Of a stretch of 64,000 bases of DNA, positions 49,950 to 64,000 are shown piece after piece. The stretch's first letter is position 1; every line of letters starts with the position of its first letter. Source of the stretch: Oculina patagonica (lineage: Eukaryota); contig NC_135770.1 in assembly GCF_052425735.1 (NCBI RefSeq), forward strand, positions 31,992,001 to 32,056,000, in the 5' to 3' direction. Made by a program: the position numbers and the translations under genes. The notes under the pieces were generated by a model. It was not told the DNA's origin. It saw only the letters and a list, made by a program, of their open reading frames with translations, and did not search any database.

Positions 49950-52900
49950 ATGATGAGCGAAGAGAGAGAAATAACACCCGAACTATCCAACAGCGTTCTT
50001 AAACAGATCCAGCAGATTGTGAAGCAAAATCCAAGCCTCCATGATAAAAATGCTGAAGAGTTGGAAACTGTCTTAACAACATTGGCAACACTTCCTTTCA
50101 AAGATGAAATCCAACAGGTTTCCTTCCTTGAACATGTTCAGTGTCTGCAGGGCTATCACATCATTCACCTTTTCAATTTTGGTGTAGCTCCTGTTCAAAA
50201 GTCTTTGGCAGAATCTTCAGCTGAGTTTGTAGAAGAAGTAATAAAGCTTGTTGAAATTTGCTTTTCATTTTGCTACATCACTGACGTGTCAAAGCGAGTT
50301 GCTTTTGATTATTACGTCAGGGCTTTGAAGTTCTGCTTCCCTTCAGAGCCAAAGCAATGCCTCTCGACTGGAGTTGTTTCCAAGTTACTGGAACTCGTAC
50401 AGATTCTTCAGGAAGGGGAACTTGCTGAAATTGTCTGTGACAAAACTAAGGAAGAAGCCAACTCGAAGTTGCAAATCCACGGCACCTATTATTTCTTTGG
50501 TGAACTCCTCCAGATATTTGAATCGAGACGGCACGAGGACTGCCTTGTGGAAATCATTGAGCAAACAGTGAGGATAGCTTCTGCAGATGCTACAATAAAA
50601 TGCATTCAACAACATGCAATCGGCGAAGTGACTTTGCAAAGTAAACACGTGGTATCTCCAGTTGTTTTAACAAATTGGATGAAACTACTGAAGTTAGGAA
50701 ATGTGAGCAACGGCTTTGCATTCTCTCTAGCAAAGGCTGACAACCCTAGTCTTAGTCGCACAAAGCAAATTGTGCCATCCTTTTTTGGTCAATTTTTGTC
50801 ACAAACTAGGCTTTCTTATCAGTCCACCGTTTGCTGTTTTGTAAGGCTTTTGGACGAAATGCAGAAAAAAGGTGTTGAAGTTATCCTCCCTCGTGACAAA
50901 GATAGGCTGGATATATTCTTCAGCCATTTAAATCACTTGTGCAATCATCCTAACGTGACAGCGACATCACTTAAACTTCTAGCAGCCACAAGCATTAGGA
51001 ATGAAGTCCTAAGAGAGGTTCTTGACCAGTTCTTTTACAAAGGCAAAATGGCGACTGTCTTGAACAGGGAAGTAGCATTTGACCTGGTCTTTAAAGTGTT
51101 ATCTTTACTTCCAGACGGTGAAATCGTGAAGAGAGCTCTGACGTTATGGAGAGAAGTCTTTAGTGATGATACAGGCTACCAGACGCTTGTATGCTTGTTG
51201 GCTCTTTTAGACGTGGAAGGATCAAACAACGAAAGGGTTGGTTCTCAGGAGAGAGCAGAAAGAACATTGGATTTCCTAGAATGGCTTCCTCGCCCCTTAC
51301 TTCGTTCGATAAGCCTATGGCAAGGGTTCCTTTTGTGGTTTGTAAAGATTTTTCCAAATACGTTTCAAAGGCGTCCAGAGGTATTGGTCTTCATTCACAA
51401 AGCTCTACTAGCCGGACAAGTGCCAGCCCAACGACGTCAAGTCGCCTTGGAACAAGTACCAACTCTTCAGTTGTTAGAGTGGCTTTCCCAACAAAGCTGC
51501 ACAGAAGAAACAAAAAGCGAGATGATTTGGCTTCTCATGTGTTTCACAGATAGAGCGGTAAACCTCAACTCGGCGTTTGATACTGGGGTCATCAAGTCGT
51601 TGAGTCTGTTCCCGCGGCTGTCATTCAACACAAAGAAAATTGTTTTGCGTGAGATAACTAATTTCACACCATTTTTCAAGAATGAAGAGAAAATGGTTTT
51701 TAAAAATTTCATCGAAAACGTTGCAGAAAATCAAACAATTGAACCTATGGATGAAATCTTGTTCGAGTTTCTTGATTTTATCAAGGGTTTCGTTGTTCAC
51801 CAGAAACCTGAAGACGTTTTAGAGCTTCTTTCATTGTTGTCAAGAATGCCAATTTCCACTGAAAGAAAAGTGAAATTGATGCAGTTGTCGAAGAATTCCA
51901 GAAAAGGTTTACTGAACAGTTTACGTATTTTGCAGTTAATTGAAACGCAGCATCGGTTCGGCCATCAAGAAAGAACAAATGAATATTTTGATCTCCTTTA
52001 TGCTGCAATTTTCAAGACTCTCGAGGAAGACATTGATTTATGTGAACAGTTTTACGATCAAAATTGTTTCTATTTTCCTTCCAGCGACGTTCGAAATGTG
52101 TGGACCTTTGCGGTCGCTGGTTTGACATCGTTGGGTTTGTTCAAAGAAGAGATCGACTCACGATGTTGCCGTCCTGTTCTTCAACAAGCTATTGGATTTA
52201 GCTCACCGTTTGAGATTTTGCAACTTCTTACCCAAGTAAGGTCGACAGCTTCCAGAGTTGTCCACCTGTCACGCCAACGCCAAGCAGAGTCTAGTTTATC
52301 CTGCAATGCTTCACAAGAGATTTCCACTGGGCAGATCGATCTCCTGGAAAACTTTGTTGCATCCGTCACGACCGTTCTGGGTACAGACATGTTATCGTCC
52401 GGTGAAAAGATGTTGCTGGTTATGAAAGTGTGTGATTTTGTTCTTAGCACGCCAGATGTTTTAACAACAACGAGCTTGAGGAATGCCTTAAACAATTTGA
52501 TTCCTTACTTTTCCTGGCAACGAAGTACTCCATCAAGAAGTGAAAACATACAACTGGCGATTAACTGCATCGAAGCCGTACTGGAAAATCCCACGGTTCT
52601 GGCCCAACTTTCAAAAATTTCAGTCAACCAACCAGATACTTCTTTTGGTGCCATTCTCTTCAAAAATATGCCCAGTTCATTGTGCAAAGAGAACTTGATG
52701 GACATCTTACGTTTCATTGGGTCTCTAGAGGACCTTCATCAAAAATTCTTTGACCATTTATTGCCTTTTTTGGAGGTGGCTATCCAGGAAACCACGACAG
52801 TGGAAGACATACTGGAACGTTTGAAGGAATTGGTGCACCTTCTCCGCAGTACTCCCATAGCATCGATTCCTCTTACGATGCTCAACTTCGCTTACTTTTT

Positions 52901-55900
52901 AAAAAAGTCTGTCGGCAAACAAGAAAGGGACAGATTTCTCTCTGAAGTTGCCATGAGATGGAAACTGTTGCCTAACCACCGCGTTCTCAAGTGTTTTGAA
53001 GTCCCCCGTCTTCTTTGGAAAGCGTACAATGCTGCCAGCACCCCAGAAAAAAGGTTTGAAATGGTAGATCGTGTGCAAGAAATCCTGATGAAAAACAGGC
53101 AAGTTGACGAATGGGTGATGAGAAGCGATATGTATTTCGAAAGGCCTGAGGATAACATTAGAAGACGAATTGCATGTTGCGAGCTTGAGTGGCTTGTCTT
53201 TCATTCCTCTCTCCCAACTGAAAATGCGGCCCTTGCATTCGATCTGAGCTGTCTTGCCTTACAAGGATTCTTCCACCCACATCTTAAATGTTTTTATTTT
53301 TCTGACGCACAAATCAGTGAAGATGGGGCTTTCAAGTTTGCACCTCAAGGAAATAAAACGACAACAAAAGCACATCTACCTGACGAAGACACTGGGCCAA
53401 CTTCTAGCGTTGCAAAGGCATCTACAAGAAATTCCTCTTCAGCCACGGAGCCACAAAAAGCCACGTTAACACCAGTCTTAGTGGCCAAGGAAGTGATTTA
53501 TCATTTGAAACGTGTACTCGGTCAAGAAAACGACCCCTCTGCAAATGCGTTTTCGCTTTGGAACCTTGTGTTCAACCAGACGAAACCATTCACTTGGTGT
53601 GAGATAGAATGCATAAAAAGTTCACCTTTTCTTGATGACTATGTGGATGTTTTCCTGTCAATTTTAGCAGAGGCCTCGTCAATAGAAATGTTGTTCCACT
53701 GGGCACAACTAAATCAGCACCACGTCTGCCAGTGCTCAGAGGCTATTTTGAAAGCTTGCAAGTGGAAAGGAGACGACATTGACAAGGATGGCCTCTTTGA
53801 ACTTCAAACTTTGGTTAGCACAACACTGGAGAAAATGCGATTAAATACACGTGTAACGCTTACAGCTCCATTGGCGATTTCTGTTGCAGTTCCATGTTTT
53901 CGCCTTTTTAAACCGCAAATAATACACATGAGTAATATGCTCGAGAGCAGATTGCCTTTCGAGGTAACAACGAGAGTTCTTGCTCTCTATCAGATCAATG
54001 TCCGAGCTGGAGTCACAGTTGGAGAAATCGTCTCTTTCTGGCCATGCAAACAGCAGTCACTGAAACTGGTAGAAGACATTCAACCGTTTTGCAAAGAAGA
54101 CGAGATATCTTCCTTAAACCCTGCCCAAAGTGAATTTGCATGGCAATTGCTGAAGGTTTTTGGCCGGTTTTGCATTAACTCGTGTGAAAGTATTTTAACC
54201 AAGTTTAAGGAACTGATTGTACTGTACGATCCAGAAGATGCGTACGGTCTCAATCGCTTGCCCAGCTGGCGAGAGATGATGGTAGTAGACGGCTTTCCCG
54301 CCTTGGTGATTGACTCTTGGTGTGCAGCATTCCTGATGACGCCTCTTGACGATCTTACATCACGTGATGTTGACGCCATTGTTGACCTCAATTCCCACTC
54401 CTTGGGGCTTGTTACATCTGTTTCTCAACTAATAAAACAAGTCATCTTTCCTCAAAATGGTTTTGAAGTTACGCAAGGTAAAGGTATCAAGGAACGTCCA
54501 ATCAAGGAACTTATCCGGTTAGCTAGATTGCTTGGCGAGTTCATCAACATATTGAAAGGTCGAAAACCCGAAGAAAACCGCAAAGATGCTGTCGTCAGAG
54601 ACATTGTTGTCGATGCTTGTGTTGAGCTTTGCAGAAGTCATGAAAATGTCAACAGGAAAAGGAACGACCTCTACAAAATCCACGGCCAGAAGCTAAAGGC
54701 TCTATTCACAGAGGTCTTCGGCAAGCGACGTAAGAGCGAAGATGGTCAAGCCAGTATTCAAGATTGTGGACTGATACACAAAGAAGGCGAACAAGGGTTC
54801 AGAGTCGCAGTGCCTGTAGACAGACAGTCATCGTATCTGCACGAAAACCTTCCATCCGTGTTGAGTCACACACAAGTTTATGAACCAATGCTGATGTTGT
54901 TGCGGCGTTGGTTATCAGGCATCATGACAAAGCCAACCCTTGCCTCTCACACTCTCGACATTGTTCAGTTACTGTTTTCAATTCACCCCTCCGATGTGGG
55001 TCCTGGTCTTCTTCAGGAGTTGCATAGCATCATCCAAGCTCGGATTTTATCCCTTGAAACCAATCAGGCTCTTGTGGCTCAGCTCCAAGCAGCGGGATAC
55101 AACCAAAGGAATGAAGGCATCCCTGACCTGTGGTCTTCGCGTGCCGTGGAGCTTCCTTGCTACCTCAGCAAGCGTGAGTCCTGGAGCGGTAGATTATTTA
55201 CGAAAAAAATGATAAAAGTTCTGAGACCCCTTTGGAACGAGTGGAAGGACATCCTTGACATGTTTTACATTGCTTCCATTAAAGTTGGCGAGGATGAAGT
55301 GTGTACGATAGATCTCTTTGGTGTTCAGGCCTCTTTGGACGAGATGGAAGAACAGGCTGCTGCCGTAAAGGAAGTAGTCAAGCAAAAGGAAGTAGTCAAG
55401 CAAATTAATTCCGAAGACCTAGACAGAAGAGTGAAGCAGTTGATGCGTCTGGAGCAGCAACACCGAGCGAGGATTGAAAAACTCTACAAGAACAACAGGG
55501 TGGGTGAAGGTCGCCTATTTATTTATAATCCTAGTCTGTCTTCCGGCGCTGTTTGTTTCAGGCCAAAAATTGTCTTCTTTAAAGAAATAAAAAAGTTCGT
55601 TGTTTTTTTTTATGGGGTTTTTTTTTTTTTTTTTTAATTTTTTTAATTGAAATTTTTTTTTTTTTTTATTTAACTTTGTTTTAACCGCCAGAATATAAAG
55701 ACCAACCTCGTTCCCAGGGTCTACTAAGCTTTCAAGATGGCGGCTGGACGCAGAGACGAGCCGCCATTTTGAAAACTCGTCGCCGAGAAGACCCCAGGGA
55801 CGAGGTTGTATAAATACTTCACAACATACCATCGAAGTAACGTTATGACGTAAACGTTGAGCTTGACAGTATTTGAGTGGTGTTCCCCGTTTGGCTAAAA

Positions 55901-58900
55901 CGTTTCCCTATGCTCTTTTTCACTATACACACACACACACTACTACTACTACTACATCCCATGTTTGTATAAGCGTACGTACTTTGTGATTTTTCGCTTA
56001 CTTTTTTGGTAACTCGATTTCACTGTTCGTTCATTCGATTCATTCATTACTTCCTTTCACGATTATTTTTTCTCAATTGAAATTAAAATCTGAGCAAATT
56101 ATTCTTTTCCTTTTTTAAAGCAATTACCATTGAACTAAGTAGTCTTTTATTATATTAATTCGCCGTTCTTTTTAATAATGCTTATCCAGAATACTGTGAC
56201 TTGTAATGAGATGAAGAAATTTGTTGCCGTCTGGGAAAATCGATTTCTGGAGCAAGTCAAGTTGTGTTCAGAACGAATCCCAGGTAAGCATTAGAATTAC
56301 AGTTTCACTGTAGGAAAATGGTTACTGTGTAGAACATTGAAAATGAATTTGATAGAGGAGCTTAAGGCTATCATTCGTTTTCTATGGCACACTTATTGTA
56401 AAGAAATCAATGGCACTCTTGGTCTGTTCATGATACTTTTCAGCAAATGAGGATCATGTATACAAACAGTTGAAATGGACCGTCGATCACTATGCTTCAA
56501 CTTTCGTTTGGACGGCAAGGACGCTTATAAACAAAACTTTAGAAAAGATGAACGTTTTGAATGATGCGTTGTCATGTAGCCACTTTTAAATGAAGTACGA
56601 TTTGTGCACGTTATAACTTGACCTGTACAGCGCTGAATTTTTTTATATTTTCAGTTGTTAAAATTCTTTCTGGGGATACATGTCACTTTTAGAGCTTTTT
56701 AACTCAAAAGTGTATACGTTGAAAAGCGGGTTGACTGTCCACTTATAATATTTAGTTGGGGGGTTTTTTTTTTTGTTTCTTTTGGGGGGGGGGGGGGGGA
56801 GGTGATGTCAGAGAACAGTTTTAATTTTTTTCTTTTATGTTTCATTCATTTGTAGGATGTTACGCCCCCAATGGTTTCCACTCCGAGAAGCCTGTGATTT
56901 GTGCTTTGTCCGTGGACAACAGGATCTTGACCGTTTTCAAGGAGGAGAAGCCAGGTCGCAGAGAGGAAATCGAAAATGTTGAAGTGAAGCTTTTTGAAGC
57001 TGGTTTGTACGTGTATGGATTGCACACGAGCGGCCATGATTACGTCACTGATGAGCTGTGGGCTGCATTTTACGAGATGCTGCTGGAAAAGGAATTGGTG
57101 CCTAGCATTGTCTTGTCCAATGAAAGCCCAGGATTTGACTGGATAAAGGATTTTATACAACCTGGTTAGTGAACTCAAAGCCATTGAATTTAATCGACGG
57201 GCACAAGTCTGTCAGTCGAAGGGCAGTTCACCAAGACACCTAAACTATGTTGTTGCTTACTTGCACATTAAAAAATAGGGACTGCTCGTAGTCTACATTA
57301 TCTCCAGGTAATTCGACAAGATGATGTAAAGCATAACCTGAACTGTACCTTCTTCCGCCTTTCTTGAGCTCTGCCTCTATAGAAAGGCACTTTTCCATCA
57401 CACCATTAACGTAATCCCGAATGATCATATAACAAAATTGCTGAAATTGATCTGGCTCTGGTTCACACCATGTGCTACAAGATTGCGAGGAGAGAAAGGG
57501 CGATTCTTGCCGTTTTGTAAAAACTCCTGGATTGTGACTGCATTAAAAAGTCACAAACGGGTTTAAAGGGAGAATGCCATTTATTACGCATGTGCGGGAT
57601 AGTAGTCGAAATTTGAAAAGTTGCAAGCTCGTCTACAGAACCCCTGTTTTCGTATCAAGCGGATCTAGCTGGAACACAGGTGGTCCAAGCTCACAATTAG
57701 AGGAGTTAAAATATTTAACATAATTCTTTTTTTTACCGCGCGAACNNNNNNNNNNNNNNNNNNNNNNNNNNNNNNNNNNNNNNNNNNNNNNNNNNNNNNN
57801 NNNNNNNNNNNNNNNNNNNNNNNNNNNNNNNNNNNNNNNNNNNNNNNNNNNNNNNNNNNNNNNNNNNNNNNNNNNNNNNNNNNNNNNNNNNNNNNNNNNN
57901 NNNNTTTTAAGCGATTACCCTTTTTTTACTATATTGTACTCCTATGGCTTCCCCATTAAAAATCTGTTATCTTGTTTTTATTGTCTCATTTAGCAACAAG
58001 CCATCCCTGCCCCTGGAAGTGGGAGTTACATCGAGGCATTGTTCCCCGAGAGGAAGATTACTTGGACTACCTCCCGATAAGAGCCGCTATATGCCCTGCT
58101 TTACAGGGATTAAGAGAATTCCTAACTCTAACAAAAGAGAATGTTTCCATTTTTGAGTTCAGCGATTTCAAGGTAAATATAGCGTCTTCCGTAATATTAT
58201 CATACTTACTTCTGCTATACCCACCTTTTTGGTATTCTTGAAGATCGGGGAAAAGTTTCCCGGATGAGCTCACGCCCTGAACTTAAATTTGTCATATGAA
58301 AATCCTGTCTAGTTGCGTTTTATCGTGTCAGTTGCTTTCATACCTTTCTTGGACCCTAATGTCAAAAATAGTGCGATCTAAGGACGAAACACCCAACTAG
58401 TACTGAATCGAAGCAGTCGCCGCCAAATCAATAGAGATTTCAACTTTTTATGACTTTTTACTCTGGACTTTCTAGACCTCAAGCAGACATAGTATCTTCC
58501 TATTTGTAAATGCTGTTCTACTTTCGTAGCTTAAAACAAAAGACATCAACCGTGACGATGTTCGGAAATGTGTTATTAATTAGCATAGATTTTTGCAACT
58601 ACGTTTTTTATTTTCTCCATAGGGTTTGTTTCGATTGAGAAGATACATCAAACACTCGAGACAGTGTTTTATCACATATAAATATCCAAACATCTCGAAC
58701 TGGATGCAAAAATACTTCGCTGTGCGTCGTATTTTTTACTTCCTTCTTGGTATTTGGAACTGTGATCAATCGCTGTCTCTCGTGTTTGATATATTACTTG
58801 AAAATTTGGATGTCGCTTTGTTTGTTTAAAGGATACACCCGAAATCAGTTAAGTCATTTTCAACTAATATTAGATTGTACTTTGTTTTAAGGACGTTAAC

Positions 58901-59468
58901 ATCATCGAAAGCAAAGAAAGAAAAACAAAGGAAATGGCTGGGAAAGCCATTCAAGAACTTCAGCGCGAGTTGCACTTGTTGCACGGAGACAACGAGCCAA
59001 TCAGAAAAGCTTTGAAGGGAAAATTGACGTTTGCTGTTAAAGAGACAGTGAAGCGCATCGTCGATGGAGTGCAACCTACTGAAGAGACAGTAAAGGAGCT
59101 GATCGATATGGAAAGACTTGCCTTTGGACATCCTGAAGTGGAAAGAACTGAAGAGAGTCGGCAACAGTACGCAGCCGCAGTACTTCGTGCATGTGAGCAT
59201 GTAAGTGAGCATGCGCGATGAACACTTACATGGATAACATCACTGTAAATGAATATTCAACAATAGTTTTCTATTTATACAACACAGGGACGATCATTTG
59301 AAAAAAATTTAACCAGTCTTTCTGACCGAGTTTAAACCTATAATCCCCTGTAACATTTCGTTTAAACATGGTCTACATGACTGATGACCTTTAAATGTTT
59401 TTCTTCTCATTTACGCTTCATGGATGTTCTTTTAGGTCTTTTTAGTACAGATTGCGCCGACAGCGTAA
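49950..59468 (+). CDS. Giant uncharacterised alpha-helical protein, ~2157 aa; exons 49950-55499, 56190-56283, 56856-57164, 57994-58172, 58892-59200, 59436-59468
   Basis: 1850-codon uninterrupted first exon; donor AGG|gtgggt; downstream exons have GT-AG sites, compatible phases (0,1,1,0,0) and end VFLVQIAPTA*. An N-gap in intron 3 could hide an exon. Confidence 0.8.
55703..55808. mobile_element. 106-bp MITE with 9-bp TSD
   Basis: caacctcgttcccagggtct ... agaccccagggacgaggttg; TSD tataaagac / tataaatac. Confidence 0.75.
57746..57904. other. Assembly gap
   Basis: Run of N. Confidence 1.
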
Positions 59469-62177: not shown

Positions 62178-64000
62178 ATGAACGAAGAGAGGGAAGCGAT
62201 AGCTGAGCTGCCTAACAGCGGTGGCAAACAGGGTCAGCAGATTTCAAGACTTCATTGTAAAAATGAGGAAGAATTAGAAAAGGACTTAGCAACATTGTCA
62301 GCTCTTCCTTTCAAAGATGAAATCCAACGGGCTTCCTTTCTTGAACATGTTCAACGTTTGCAGGGCTATCACATCATTCAGCTCTTCAATTTTGGCGTAG
62401 TTCCACTTCAAAGATCTTTGGCAGAATCTTCAGCTGATATTATACAAGAAGTTAACAAGCTTGTTGAAATTTGCCTTTCTTTTTGCTACACCCCTGACGT
62501 GTCAAATCGAGTTGCTTTTGATTATTACATTAGAGCTTTGAAATTCTGCTTCCCTTTTGACCCAAAGGAATGCCTATCAACTGCAGTTGTTTCTAAGTTA
62601 CTCCAACTCGTTCAGATCTTTCAGGAAGGGAAGCTTGCTGATATAACCGATGACAAAACTAAGTGTCAGGCCAGTTTCGTGAAGTTTCAATTGAACGGCA
62701 CCAATTATTTCTTCTGTGAACTCCTCCACATATTTGAATCGAGGCGACACGGGGGCCACCTTGAGGAAATCATTGATGAAACATTAAGGATAGCTTCGGT
62801 AGATGCCAGACATGCAACCACGGACTTGGCTTTGCAAACCCTTGAACATGTGGTTTCTCCAGTTTTCGTGAGAAATTGGATGAATCTACTGTCTTCAACG
62901 CATGTAAGTTGTGGTTTTGCAGTCCGTTTAGCAAAGGCTGACAGTTTAAGTTGCACGGACCAATCAACCATTTGCTATTTCGTAAGTGTATCAGAAGATT
63001 CGAAGAAAAACGGCATTGAAGTTAGCCTACCCTGTGACAAAGAAAGGTTGGATATATATTCAACCATTTAAAACACTTCTTGGTCCATCGTGACATGGCA
63101 ACGACATCACTTAAGCTCTTAGCAGCCATGGACGTCAGCAACAAAGTCCTAAGAGAGGTTCTCGACCAGTTCTGTTACAAAGAGGCAGTGGCTTCTGACT
63201 GCAGAGAAATAGCATTCAAGCTTATCTTTAAAGTCTTATCTTTAGTTCCAGACGGTGAACTGGTGAAGAAAGTTTTGAATTTTTGGAGAGAAGCATTTCC
63301 TGCTGACCCAGAGTACCAAGCTCTTGTGTGCTTGTTGGCGCTCTTTGTGCAAAAAACAAACAACGAAACCTTTTGTTTGCATGAAGAAGCAGAAAAGATA
63401 TTTGATTTCGTTGAAGGCCTTCCTCACCGTTTGTTTCCTTTGATAAGCCTTTGGCAAAGGTTCCTGTGGTGGTTTATAAAGATGTTTCCAGCTACGTTTC
63501 AAAGGCGTCCAGAGGTATTATCTTTCATTAACAAAGCAGCTCAACTTGCCCCTCGAGTGCCAGTCGAGGAACGCAGAGCTTGCGATATTAGAGGACAGAT
63601 TCATATAACGCTTCAGTTTTTACAATGGGTTTCTGAACAAAACTGCACTGAAGAAATGAGAAGCGAGATGATTCAGCTTCTCTTGTGTTGTACAGGCGAA
63701 GAAAGCTTCGAGGGGTTGTTTGCAATTGACACTTGGGTCATCAAATCGTTATGCTTGTGCACGCGATTGGCATTCAGCACCAAGGAACAAATTATACGCG
63801 AACTTACCTATTTAGCCCCATTTCTCAAACAACAGGAGAAAACCGTTGTCAATAATTTCATTGAAAACATAACAAATCGAACTCTTGAATATACAGAAAA
63901 AATCTTGCTTGAATTTCTTGATTTTATCAAACGCTCCGTTGACGGCCAGAACCCCAACGCCATTCCTGAAGACATCATGAAGATTCTATCAATGCTGTCA
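62178..64000 (+). CDS. Tandem paralog of the giant protein (5' part), with a 1-nt frameshift near 63058; runs off the window end
   Basis: Shares LPFKDEIQ..SFLEHVQ.LQGYHII.LFNFGV and RVAFDYY.RALKFCFP with the 49950 ORF. After the shift, FNHLKHF...TSLKLLAA...VLREVLDQF...TFQRRPEVL continues in an apparently open frame. Confidence 0.75.

Follow-up and report, generated by a model that had tools for sequence, protein, structure and literature searches.

What does a giant helical protein of a stony coral carry at its C-terminal end, and what could that part do? The question is raised by a gene at 49950-59221 on the forward strand of a 64,000-nucleotide stretch of Oculina patagonica DNA (NCBI RefSeq assembly GCF_052425735.1, contig NC_135770.1, positions 31,992,001 to 32,056,000; hereafter the window). 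An original prediction, made from the letters alone, held that ~1700 residues of helical sequence lead into a bacterial-looking, catalytic-type module that becomes visible after splicing. We find that the gene is a real, transcribed, five-exon stony coral gene. Its alpha/beta domain very probably adopts a GNAT-like fold, to judge from structure models, and by sequence comparison founds an undescribed family, outside the Pfam, NCBIfam and PDB sequence models. The reading that we favour overall, with some reserve, is that the giant protein joins a fast-evolving helical scaffold to a conserved cassette ending in an undescribed GNAT-fold family whose cysteine may act as a nucleophile.

Exon 1 is one uninterrupted open reading frame (ORF) of 1850 codons (49950-55499) that ends at a GT donor, and the helical lead-in is therefore real. 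Joined to four further exons, with GT..AG at every junction, it gives a stop-free protein of 2153 amino acids (aa), and splicing 49950-55499, 56190-56283 and 56856-57164 exactly regained the peptides quoted in the original prediction. The proposed end of the module at 57164 was off by two exons: 57994-58172 and 58892-59221 come after it, and exon 4 completes the domain. The parts of the gene are:

49950..55029 (+): exon 1, first ~1693 codons; helical (alpha-solenoid-like) body, an uninterrupted ORF with no Pfam domain
55030..55499 (+): last part of exon 1; first half of the conserved cassette, helical/coiled-coil in character, with the motif N-x7-L-x3-GY...LW; BLASTP homology starts here
55500..56189 (+): intron 1, GT..AG; the joint that skips it is in contigs of all four public runs described below
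56190..56283 (+): exon 2; β1, α1 and the start of the conserved loop (KKFVAVWENRF...CSERIPG), placed from translation, splice sites, orthologue models and AlphaFold2 secondary structure
56284..56855 (+): intron 2, GT..AG; joint 56283->56856 in contigs of the four runs
56856..57164 (+): exon 3; core of the GNAT-like domain (β2-β5, α3 and the EIENVE strand), from splice sites, the AlphaFold2 model and conservation
within exon 3 (+): loop G-C-Y-A-P-N-G-F-H-S-E-K-P, with the Cys codon at 56858-56860, His at 56879-56881 and Glu at 56885-56887
57165..57993 (+): intron 3; donor CTG/GTTAGT, acceptor TTTAG/CA, with a loose contig end running into exon-4 letters
57994..58172 (+): exon 4; the domain's last strand (EFLTLT; model E176-179), preceded by an insertion with a conserved Y-x-D (...DYLDYLP); orthologue models agree
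58892..59221 (+): exon 5; C-terminal tail up to the stop codon, helical, with long helices in the first AlphaFold2 model

Contigs from four public runs, belonging to three studies, contain the joints 55499->56190 and 56283->56856, and over the region 55300-57700 the exons are covered and the introns uncovered. That these runs are RNA is our guess and not their label; we take them as RNA-like because contigs that skip GT..AG introns are what transcripts give. The contigs are loose at 57164, a phase-1 donor, and their continuation consists of the opening letters of exon 4. Intron 3 holds a 159-base run of N (57746-57904), and this assembly gap was excluded from contig placement; the exon 3-exon 4 junction therefore rests on the loose end and on orthologue models. 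The same splicing, including the two further exons, appears in NCBI/JGI models from Orbicella (P0008), Stylophora (P0097) and Montipora (P0102) and in model P0053. Together, the GT..AG signals, the contig joints in the four runs and the orthologue models establish 55499/56190 and 56283/56856 as pairs of true last and first exon bases, and both junctions of the original prediction have presumed RNA support.

At the 3′ end of the gene, a strong donor-like CAT/GTAAGT lies at 59199 (within 59197-59221), 23 bases ahead of the stop, and the short tails past 'RACEH' differ among orthologue models. A sixth mini-exon or an alternative 3′ end that uses this donor is possible. Intron 1 contains a 106-nt palindromic element (55703-55808) that resembles a miniature inverted-repeat transposable element (MITE), has nested inverted repeats of 23 and 19 nt and lacks an Rfam match. 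The summed contig depth over it is very high, and it is therefore multi-copy and transcribed somewhere.

Comparison with other cnidarians revealed that the two parts of the protein evolve at different rates. Against other corals, the C-terminal alpha/beta segment is 73-86% identical, compared with 43-64% for the N-terminal ~1690 residues; against the anemone Actinia, the values are 47% for the alpha/beta segment and 21% for the helical part. The alpha/beta domain is thus the best-conserved part of the giant protein. Full-length homologues of the exon-1 helical body were found in scleractinians and anemones only. A word-based search with the whole exon-1 protein returned scleractinian proteins only, while the C-terminal piece added an anemone protein; the top protein matches came from Orbicella, Stylophora, Montipora and Desmophyllum. 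A Pfam scan found no domain in the helical body, and its language-model features resemble those of EPG5, Med23 and INTS1, all large helical scaffolds, a resemblance that we treat as a lead only.

The gene is not alone. Three exon-3 copies are present in the coral genome, all on this contig as a tandem series spaced by ~12 kb and 14.6 kb, with none elsewhere; the second and third lie at contig positions 32060909 and 32075481 (G000:C13). The tandem copies that the original prediction had noted are thus real, and Stylophora likewise has three adjacent loci of the giant gene on one scaffold. The next copy begins inside the window:

62178..64000 (+): start of the next tandem paralogue, which runs off the window; its reading frame changes near 63044-63059

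This frame change in copy 2 is possibly a frameshift, a small intron or an assembly error. Exon 3 of the copy is intact, at 93% identity, despite the change upstream.

Where does the conserved part begin, and what else carries it? Homology to giant proteins of sponges, Amoebozoa and bacteria begins near coral residue 1690 (aa ~1687-1700 in BLASTP) and extends beyond the alpha/beta segment, as the helical segment and the coiled coil are also common to the relatives. The cassette that follows the ~1690 scaffold residues is ~360 aa long and consists of a helical segment with N-x7-L-x3-GY...LW, a motif kept from bacteria to corals, then a coiled coil and an alpha/beta domain of ~190 aa. When 1.84 billion representatives were searched exhaustively with an HMMER profile, 136 hits emerged. 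On the eukaryotic side these included giant proteins of corals, anemones (Actinia and Actinostola) and sponges (Sycon and Oopsacas), long hits in giant proteins of Amoebozoa (Cavostelium, Pyxidicula, Pelomyxa, Mastigamoeba, Mastigella and Clydonella) and one protein of the chytrid Rhizophlyctis. No mention of the orthologue locus names was found in the papers searched.

As the original prediction had supposed, homologues are found in large bacterial proteins. Among GTDB species genomes, a scan located 18 loci in metagenome-assembled genomes (MAGs): 11 labelled Omnitrophota, 4 Planctomycetota, Saganbacteria/WOR-1, and 2 uncultured bacteria. The bacterial homologues are stop-free frames of <1000 to at least 5479 aa, chiefly from Omnitrophota and Planctomycetota, and Pfam annotation is missing over most of their length. 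The longest, L015 from an Omnitrophota MAG, is open for at least 5479 aa. HEAT repeats were detected in L003, L007 and P0219. A Planctomycetia MAG encodes a stop-free frame of at least 4403 aa (L005) that adds a eukaryote-like Ser/Thr kinase domain, and an Omnitrophota MAG encodes a 2357-aa frame (L008) that adds a protein-isoaspartate methyltransferase (PCMT). Two further bacterial proteins, P0195 (4355 aa) and P0230 (2292 aa), are encoded on metagenomic contigs 172 kb and 69 kb long, respectively, beside genes for ABC transporters, two-component systems, a sigma-70 factor and RND pumps.

What lies downstream of the cassette varies. In several eukaryote-side relatives, including Pelomyxa, Mastigella and unidentified contigs, a second, canonical GNAT follows the module after ~250-300 residues; Acetyltransf_1 scored above the Pfam cut-off in five relatives, with a normal R-G-x-G-x-A motif. 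Five amoebozoan-type proteins (P0176, P0184, P0236, P0164 and P0161 in alignment A4) have the motif NEDRVWRxRGGRP and then the canonical GNAT (YEIVTAWV...RGxGxA). Hexacorals appear to have lost both, and an exon-by-exon search of the coral genome, which is weak evidence, did not find the canonical GNAT of the relatives. The bacterial proteins carry other enzymes downstream of the cassette in its place. Since bacterial carriers hold a kinase or PCMT and eukaryote-side relatives a canonical GNAT, the cassette is the constant element, in the company of protein-modifying enzymes and helical repeats.

Within the alpha/beta domain, conservation is concentrated in one loop. The loop G-C-[YF]-x-P-x-G-x-H-x-E-x-P, between α1 and α2, is conserved in >90% of 152 homologous domains, where its conserved residues are G31, C32, P35, G37, H39, E41 and P43. 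Further conserved residues in the same 152 domains are N71 (β3), G80, V112-P113 and, in the insertion, Y156 and D158. All bacterial rows and 92% of the eukaryotic ones have the cysteine, C32, which bears out strongly the GC motif of the original prediction; also common to eukaryotes and bacteria are P35, G37, E41, P43, N71, G80, P113, Y156 and D158. In the numbering of the 2153-aa coral protein, C32, H39, E41, N71, Y156 and D158 are C1883, H1890, E1892, N1922, Y2007 and D2009.

To which fold do these residues belong? An AlphaFold2 model computed from 37 diverse domains (alignment A2) had a predicted local distance difference test (pLDDT) score of 84.8 and a predicted template modelling (TM) score of 0.84, with the element order β1-α1-(long loop)-α2-β2-β3-β4-α3-β5-α4-(insertion)-β6. 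A first run with 9 close sequences gave a pLDDT of 64, with the conserved core below 50, and we did not rely on the weak GNAT rows that it produced. With the better model, the best 50 rows of a Foldseek search against the PDB were all GNAT acetyltransferases, headed by human GCN5 (E 8.7e-4, probability 1.00, TM 0.46/0.52). Likewise, the best 50 of 48,161 representative chains in VIA-align all belonged to the GNAT superfamily (Z 7.2-8.6, root-mean-square deviation ~3-4 Å over 114-160 residues), and GNATs dominated the fold searches of AFDB clusters and of the ESM Atlas (TM by query 0.53-0.58). With four structure libraries dominated by GNATs, the GNAT-like fold of the original prediction is well backed as a prediction.

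Sequence comparison gave a different picture. General scans of Pfam, NCBIfam, PADLOC and PDB sequences yielded nothing significant for the coral protein, the cassette or its homologues; an NCBIfam scan with the module had no significant match, and sequence-profile searches of the PDB with the module came back empty. The description of the module as undescribed is in keeping with these results. The PcfJ resemblance that had been suggested alongside GNAT did not survive, as no Pfam scan, whether with the coral protein, with the module alignment or with the bacterial homologues, matched PcfJ (PF14284). A set of phage terminase-like clusters in a language-model atlas (0.91-0.94, few shared features) was unsupported by any fold search and was set aside as noise.

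One Pfam family came near the module, and it bears on a different assignment, in which the domain would have a GyrI-like/SOUL-type small-molecule-binding fold or would be a papain-like Cys-His peptidase. Cass2 matched at E 0.067, and the conserved residues do run in the order C...H...D. However, the Cass2 match is far below threshold and is not repeated across members, and neither type is among the matches listed in the four GNAT-dominated fold searches. On these searches we rejected the GyrI-like idea, and we regard the assignment as a whole as extremely improbable.

If the fold is that of a GNAT, what might the conserved loop do? In GNATs, the α1-α2 loop walls the acceptor-substrate site, beside the β4/β5 splay that holds the acyl group. 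Because of its α1-α2 position in this established architecture, the conserved loop would fall at the site of chemistry or ligand binding. Together with the β4/β5 cleft, it may form a ligand or substrate pocket; the cysteine would then most likely be the nucleophile in a ping-pong type transfer of an acyl (or similar) group, and the helical scaffold would recruit the acceptor, either a protein or a small molecule. Among GNATs, ping-pong kinetics with a nucleophilic residue have been documented (PMC8072286). PA3944-type GNATs and Cys-dependent acetyltransferases offer a precedent for a GNAT fold that works via a covalent acyl-enzyme, the chemistry that we infer for the coral cysteine, although PA3944-type enzymes keep a normal acyl-CoA site and have their nucleophile outside the α1-α2 loop. 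On the model, a cysteine-dependent transferase or ligand pocket would be the most likely mechanism, a proposal that we make tentatively, and it is with similar caution that we suggest that the predicted GNAT-like domain is catalytic. The wider proposal that the cassette is an unrecognised enzyme class, a GNAT-fold transferase in which the coenzyme A (CoA) motif was swapped for a Cys-His-Glu loop and which forms the business end of giant solenoid proteins common to Omnitrophota/Planctomycetota and to early-branching animals, fungi and amoebae, seems to us somewhat unlikely.

Several observations weigh against the reading of the protein as a scaffold with a GNAT-fold cassette and a nucleophilic cysteine. 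Motif A (Q/R-x-x-G-x-G/A), which binds the CoA pyrophosphate, is not conserved: the β4-α3 loop in corals reads Y/H-S-S-G-H-D-Y-V-T-D, of which Y87 alone is common to bacteria, G90 is not conserved and the G-x-G/A pattern is absent. None of 37 family members matched any GNAT Pfam family at E<=1, and comparison of the module with the relatives' canonical GNAT in hhalign showed no relationship (probability 0.2%). The top VIA-align Z score (8.6) barely exceeds the range that the tool calls common without a clear match; the GNAT-like fold is the clear reading despite this modest Z because the hit lists are uniform and the topology matches. In addition, the hexacoral proteins stop short of any downstream enzyme domain, and in the relatives the variable downstream enzyme (GNAT, kinase or PCMT) could be the real effector, with the domain only an adaptor. 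We can only infer the cofactor, chemistry and substrate of the domain, and likewise the 'catalytic-type' character that the original prediction gave to a module in which the canonical acetyl-CoA motif is absent.

These points lead to the main rival, a serious minority possibility: a pseudo-enzyme with a GNAT-like fold but no catalytic activity, comparable to the inactive half of a tandem-GNAT enzyme. Such a module would serve for docking or regulation and would hold partners in position on the helical scaffold. The missing motif A and the failure to match a GNAT profile fit such a module, as do the separate canonical GNAT, kinase or PCMT downstream in the relatives and the constancy of the cassette while the downstream enzyme varies. 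The hexacoral protein, which has no downstream enzyme, would then be purely a scaffold or adaptor. However, the domain is the best-conserved part of the hexacoral proteins even though the downstream enzyme is absent from them, and a near-invariant cysteine together with conserved His, Glu, Asn and Asp spans bacteria and eukaryotes.

How, then, did a module with bacterial homologues come to be in a coral? The original prediction envisaged a bacterial or phage effector-type module that animals acquired horizontally and used in defence, in tandem arrays. The existence of bacterial homologues in giant proteins, the tandem triplication here and in Stylophora and the fast evolution of the N-terminal region all suit this scenario. 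To place the coral copies, we built a quick maximum-likelihood tree (IQ-TREE, unrooted) from 50 domains, 19 of them bacterial-type (16 with a bacterial label and 3 unlabelled) and 31 eukaryotic-type. A long branch with 100% support in the Shimodaira-Hasegawa-like approximate likelihood ratio test parts the bacterial-type from the eukaryotic-type rows, and hexacorals fall on the eukaryotic side with sponges, the chytrid and Amoebozoa; support was 100% for hexacorals, 98% for sponges and, more weakly, 85% for Amoebozoa. Moreover, three spliceosomal introns interrupt the domain. The split and the introns argue against a recent bacterial acquisition by corals, and the proposed animal system acquired horizontally is at odds with a tree in which a branch with 100% support divides all bacterial copies from the eukaryotic ones. 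Since the split is clean, any transfer must be ancient; by the domain sequences, an ancient transfer between domains of life, in either direction, is possible. The family is ancient and has been patchily kept in Amorphea, here hexacorals, sponges, a chytrid and Amoebozoa.

The phage and defence parts of this scenario fared no better. Viral contigs in IMG/VR contained no homologue when searched by the bacterial-type pattern (the broad alignment was too variable to serve as a query), which leaves the suggested phage proteins without a counterpart there. Neither the cassette nor the N-terminal exon of the coral matched a PADLOC-DB model at E<=1, and the cassettes of bacteria and sponges did not either, so that the defence role also went without a hit. 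Taken with the tree and the introns, these results make recent transfer into a defensive array very improbable.

We compared the family with known systems. With the GNAT superfamily (GCN5/PCAF, RimI/RimJ, PA3270 and FdhC), the coral domain shares the predicted fold and element order, and its conserved loop falls where GNATs bind the acceptor substrate. It differs in that it has no detectable sequence relationship to them and lacks Q/R-x-x-G-x-G/A; in turn, the coral family alone has the near-invariant G-C-[YF]-x-P-x-G-x-H-x-E-x-P loop, a conserved Y-x-D in an insertion of ~50 residues ahead of the last strand, and a domain embedded in giant helical proteins. Tandem-GNAT enzymes (N-myristoyltransferase, MshD and Eis), which combine a binding half with a catalytic half, resemble those relatives in which the module is followed by a canonical GNAT. 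In the relatives, however, ~250-300 aa separate the two domains, no relationship between their sequences is detectable, and the coral, anemone and bacterial proteins lack a second GNAT. Finally, two reports describe giant mosaic proteins of Omnitrophota and Planctomycetota ('Archaeovorins' and related proteins), some with GNAT domains (bioRxiv 10.1101/2023.11.21.568195; 10.64898/2026.06.07.730766). Our bacterial homologues match these giants in phylum, in size and in having HEAT, kinase or methyltransferase domains beside the cassette, a likeness of description and not of protein identity. Keyword look-ups in the two reports turned up no mention of eukaryotic homologues.

Elsewhere in the window, upstream of the giant gene, a tandem array of single-exon ORFs lies on the forward strand (7696-9972, 11901-14183, 21704-22780, 30893-31333 and 31556-33199). 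Frames of 758 and 760 aa are accompanied by copies that are partial or split, and the product is a multi-pass membrane protein that has a signal peptide and an N-terminal ectodomain containing Cys. The sole copy scanned (7696-9972) had no Pfam match. The array looks like another lineage-specific expanded family beside the giant genes. ORF fragments at 17044-17577 (+) and 3013-3603 (+) look like retroelement or transposon remnants, judged by eye only.

Our results temper the original claim, as they offer no support for recent gene transfer or for a role in immunity. Instead, they describe a new domain family whose fold prediction and conserved-residue signature are open to testing, and they give a first handle on the tandemly multiplied 'uncharacterized' ~2000-aa proteins of corals and anemones. 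They also reveal counterparts in eukaryotes for part of the unannotated sequence of the Omnitrophota and Planctomycetota giants. Should the invariant cysteine prove catalytic, its chemistry would be unusual for the GNAT fold. If the cassette is indeed a new enzyme class, it would bring with it a new protein or small-molecule modification and would link the bacterial giants to a eukaryotic family.

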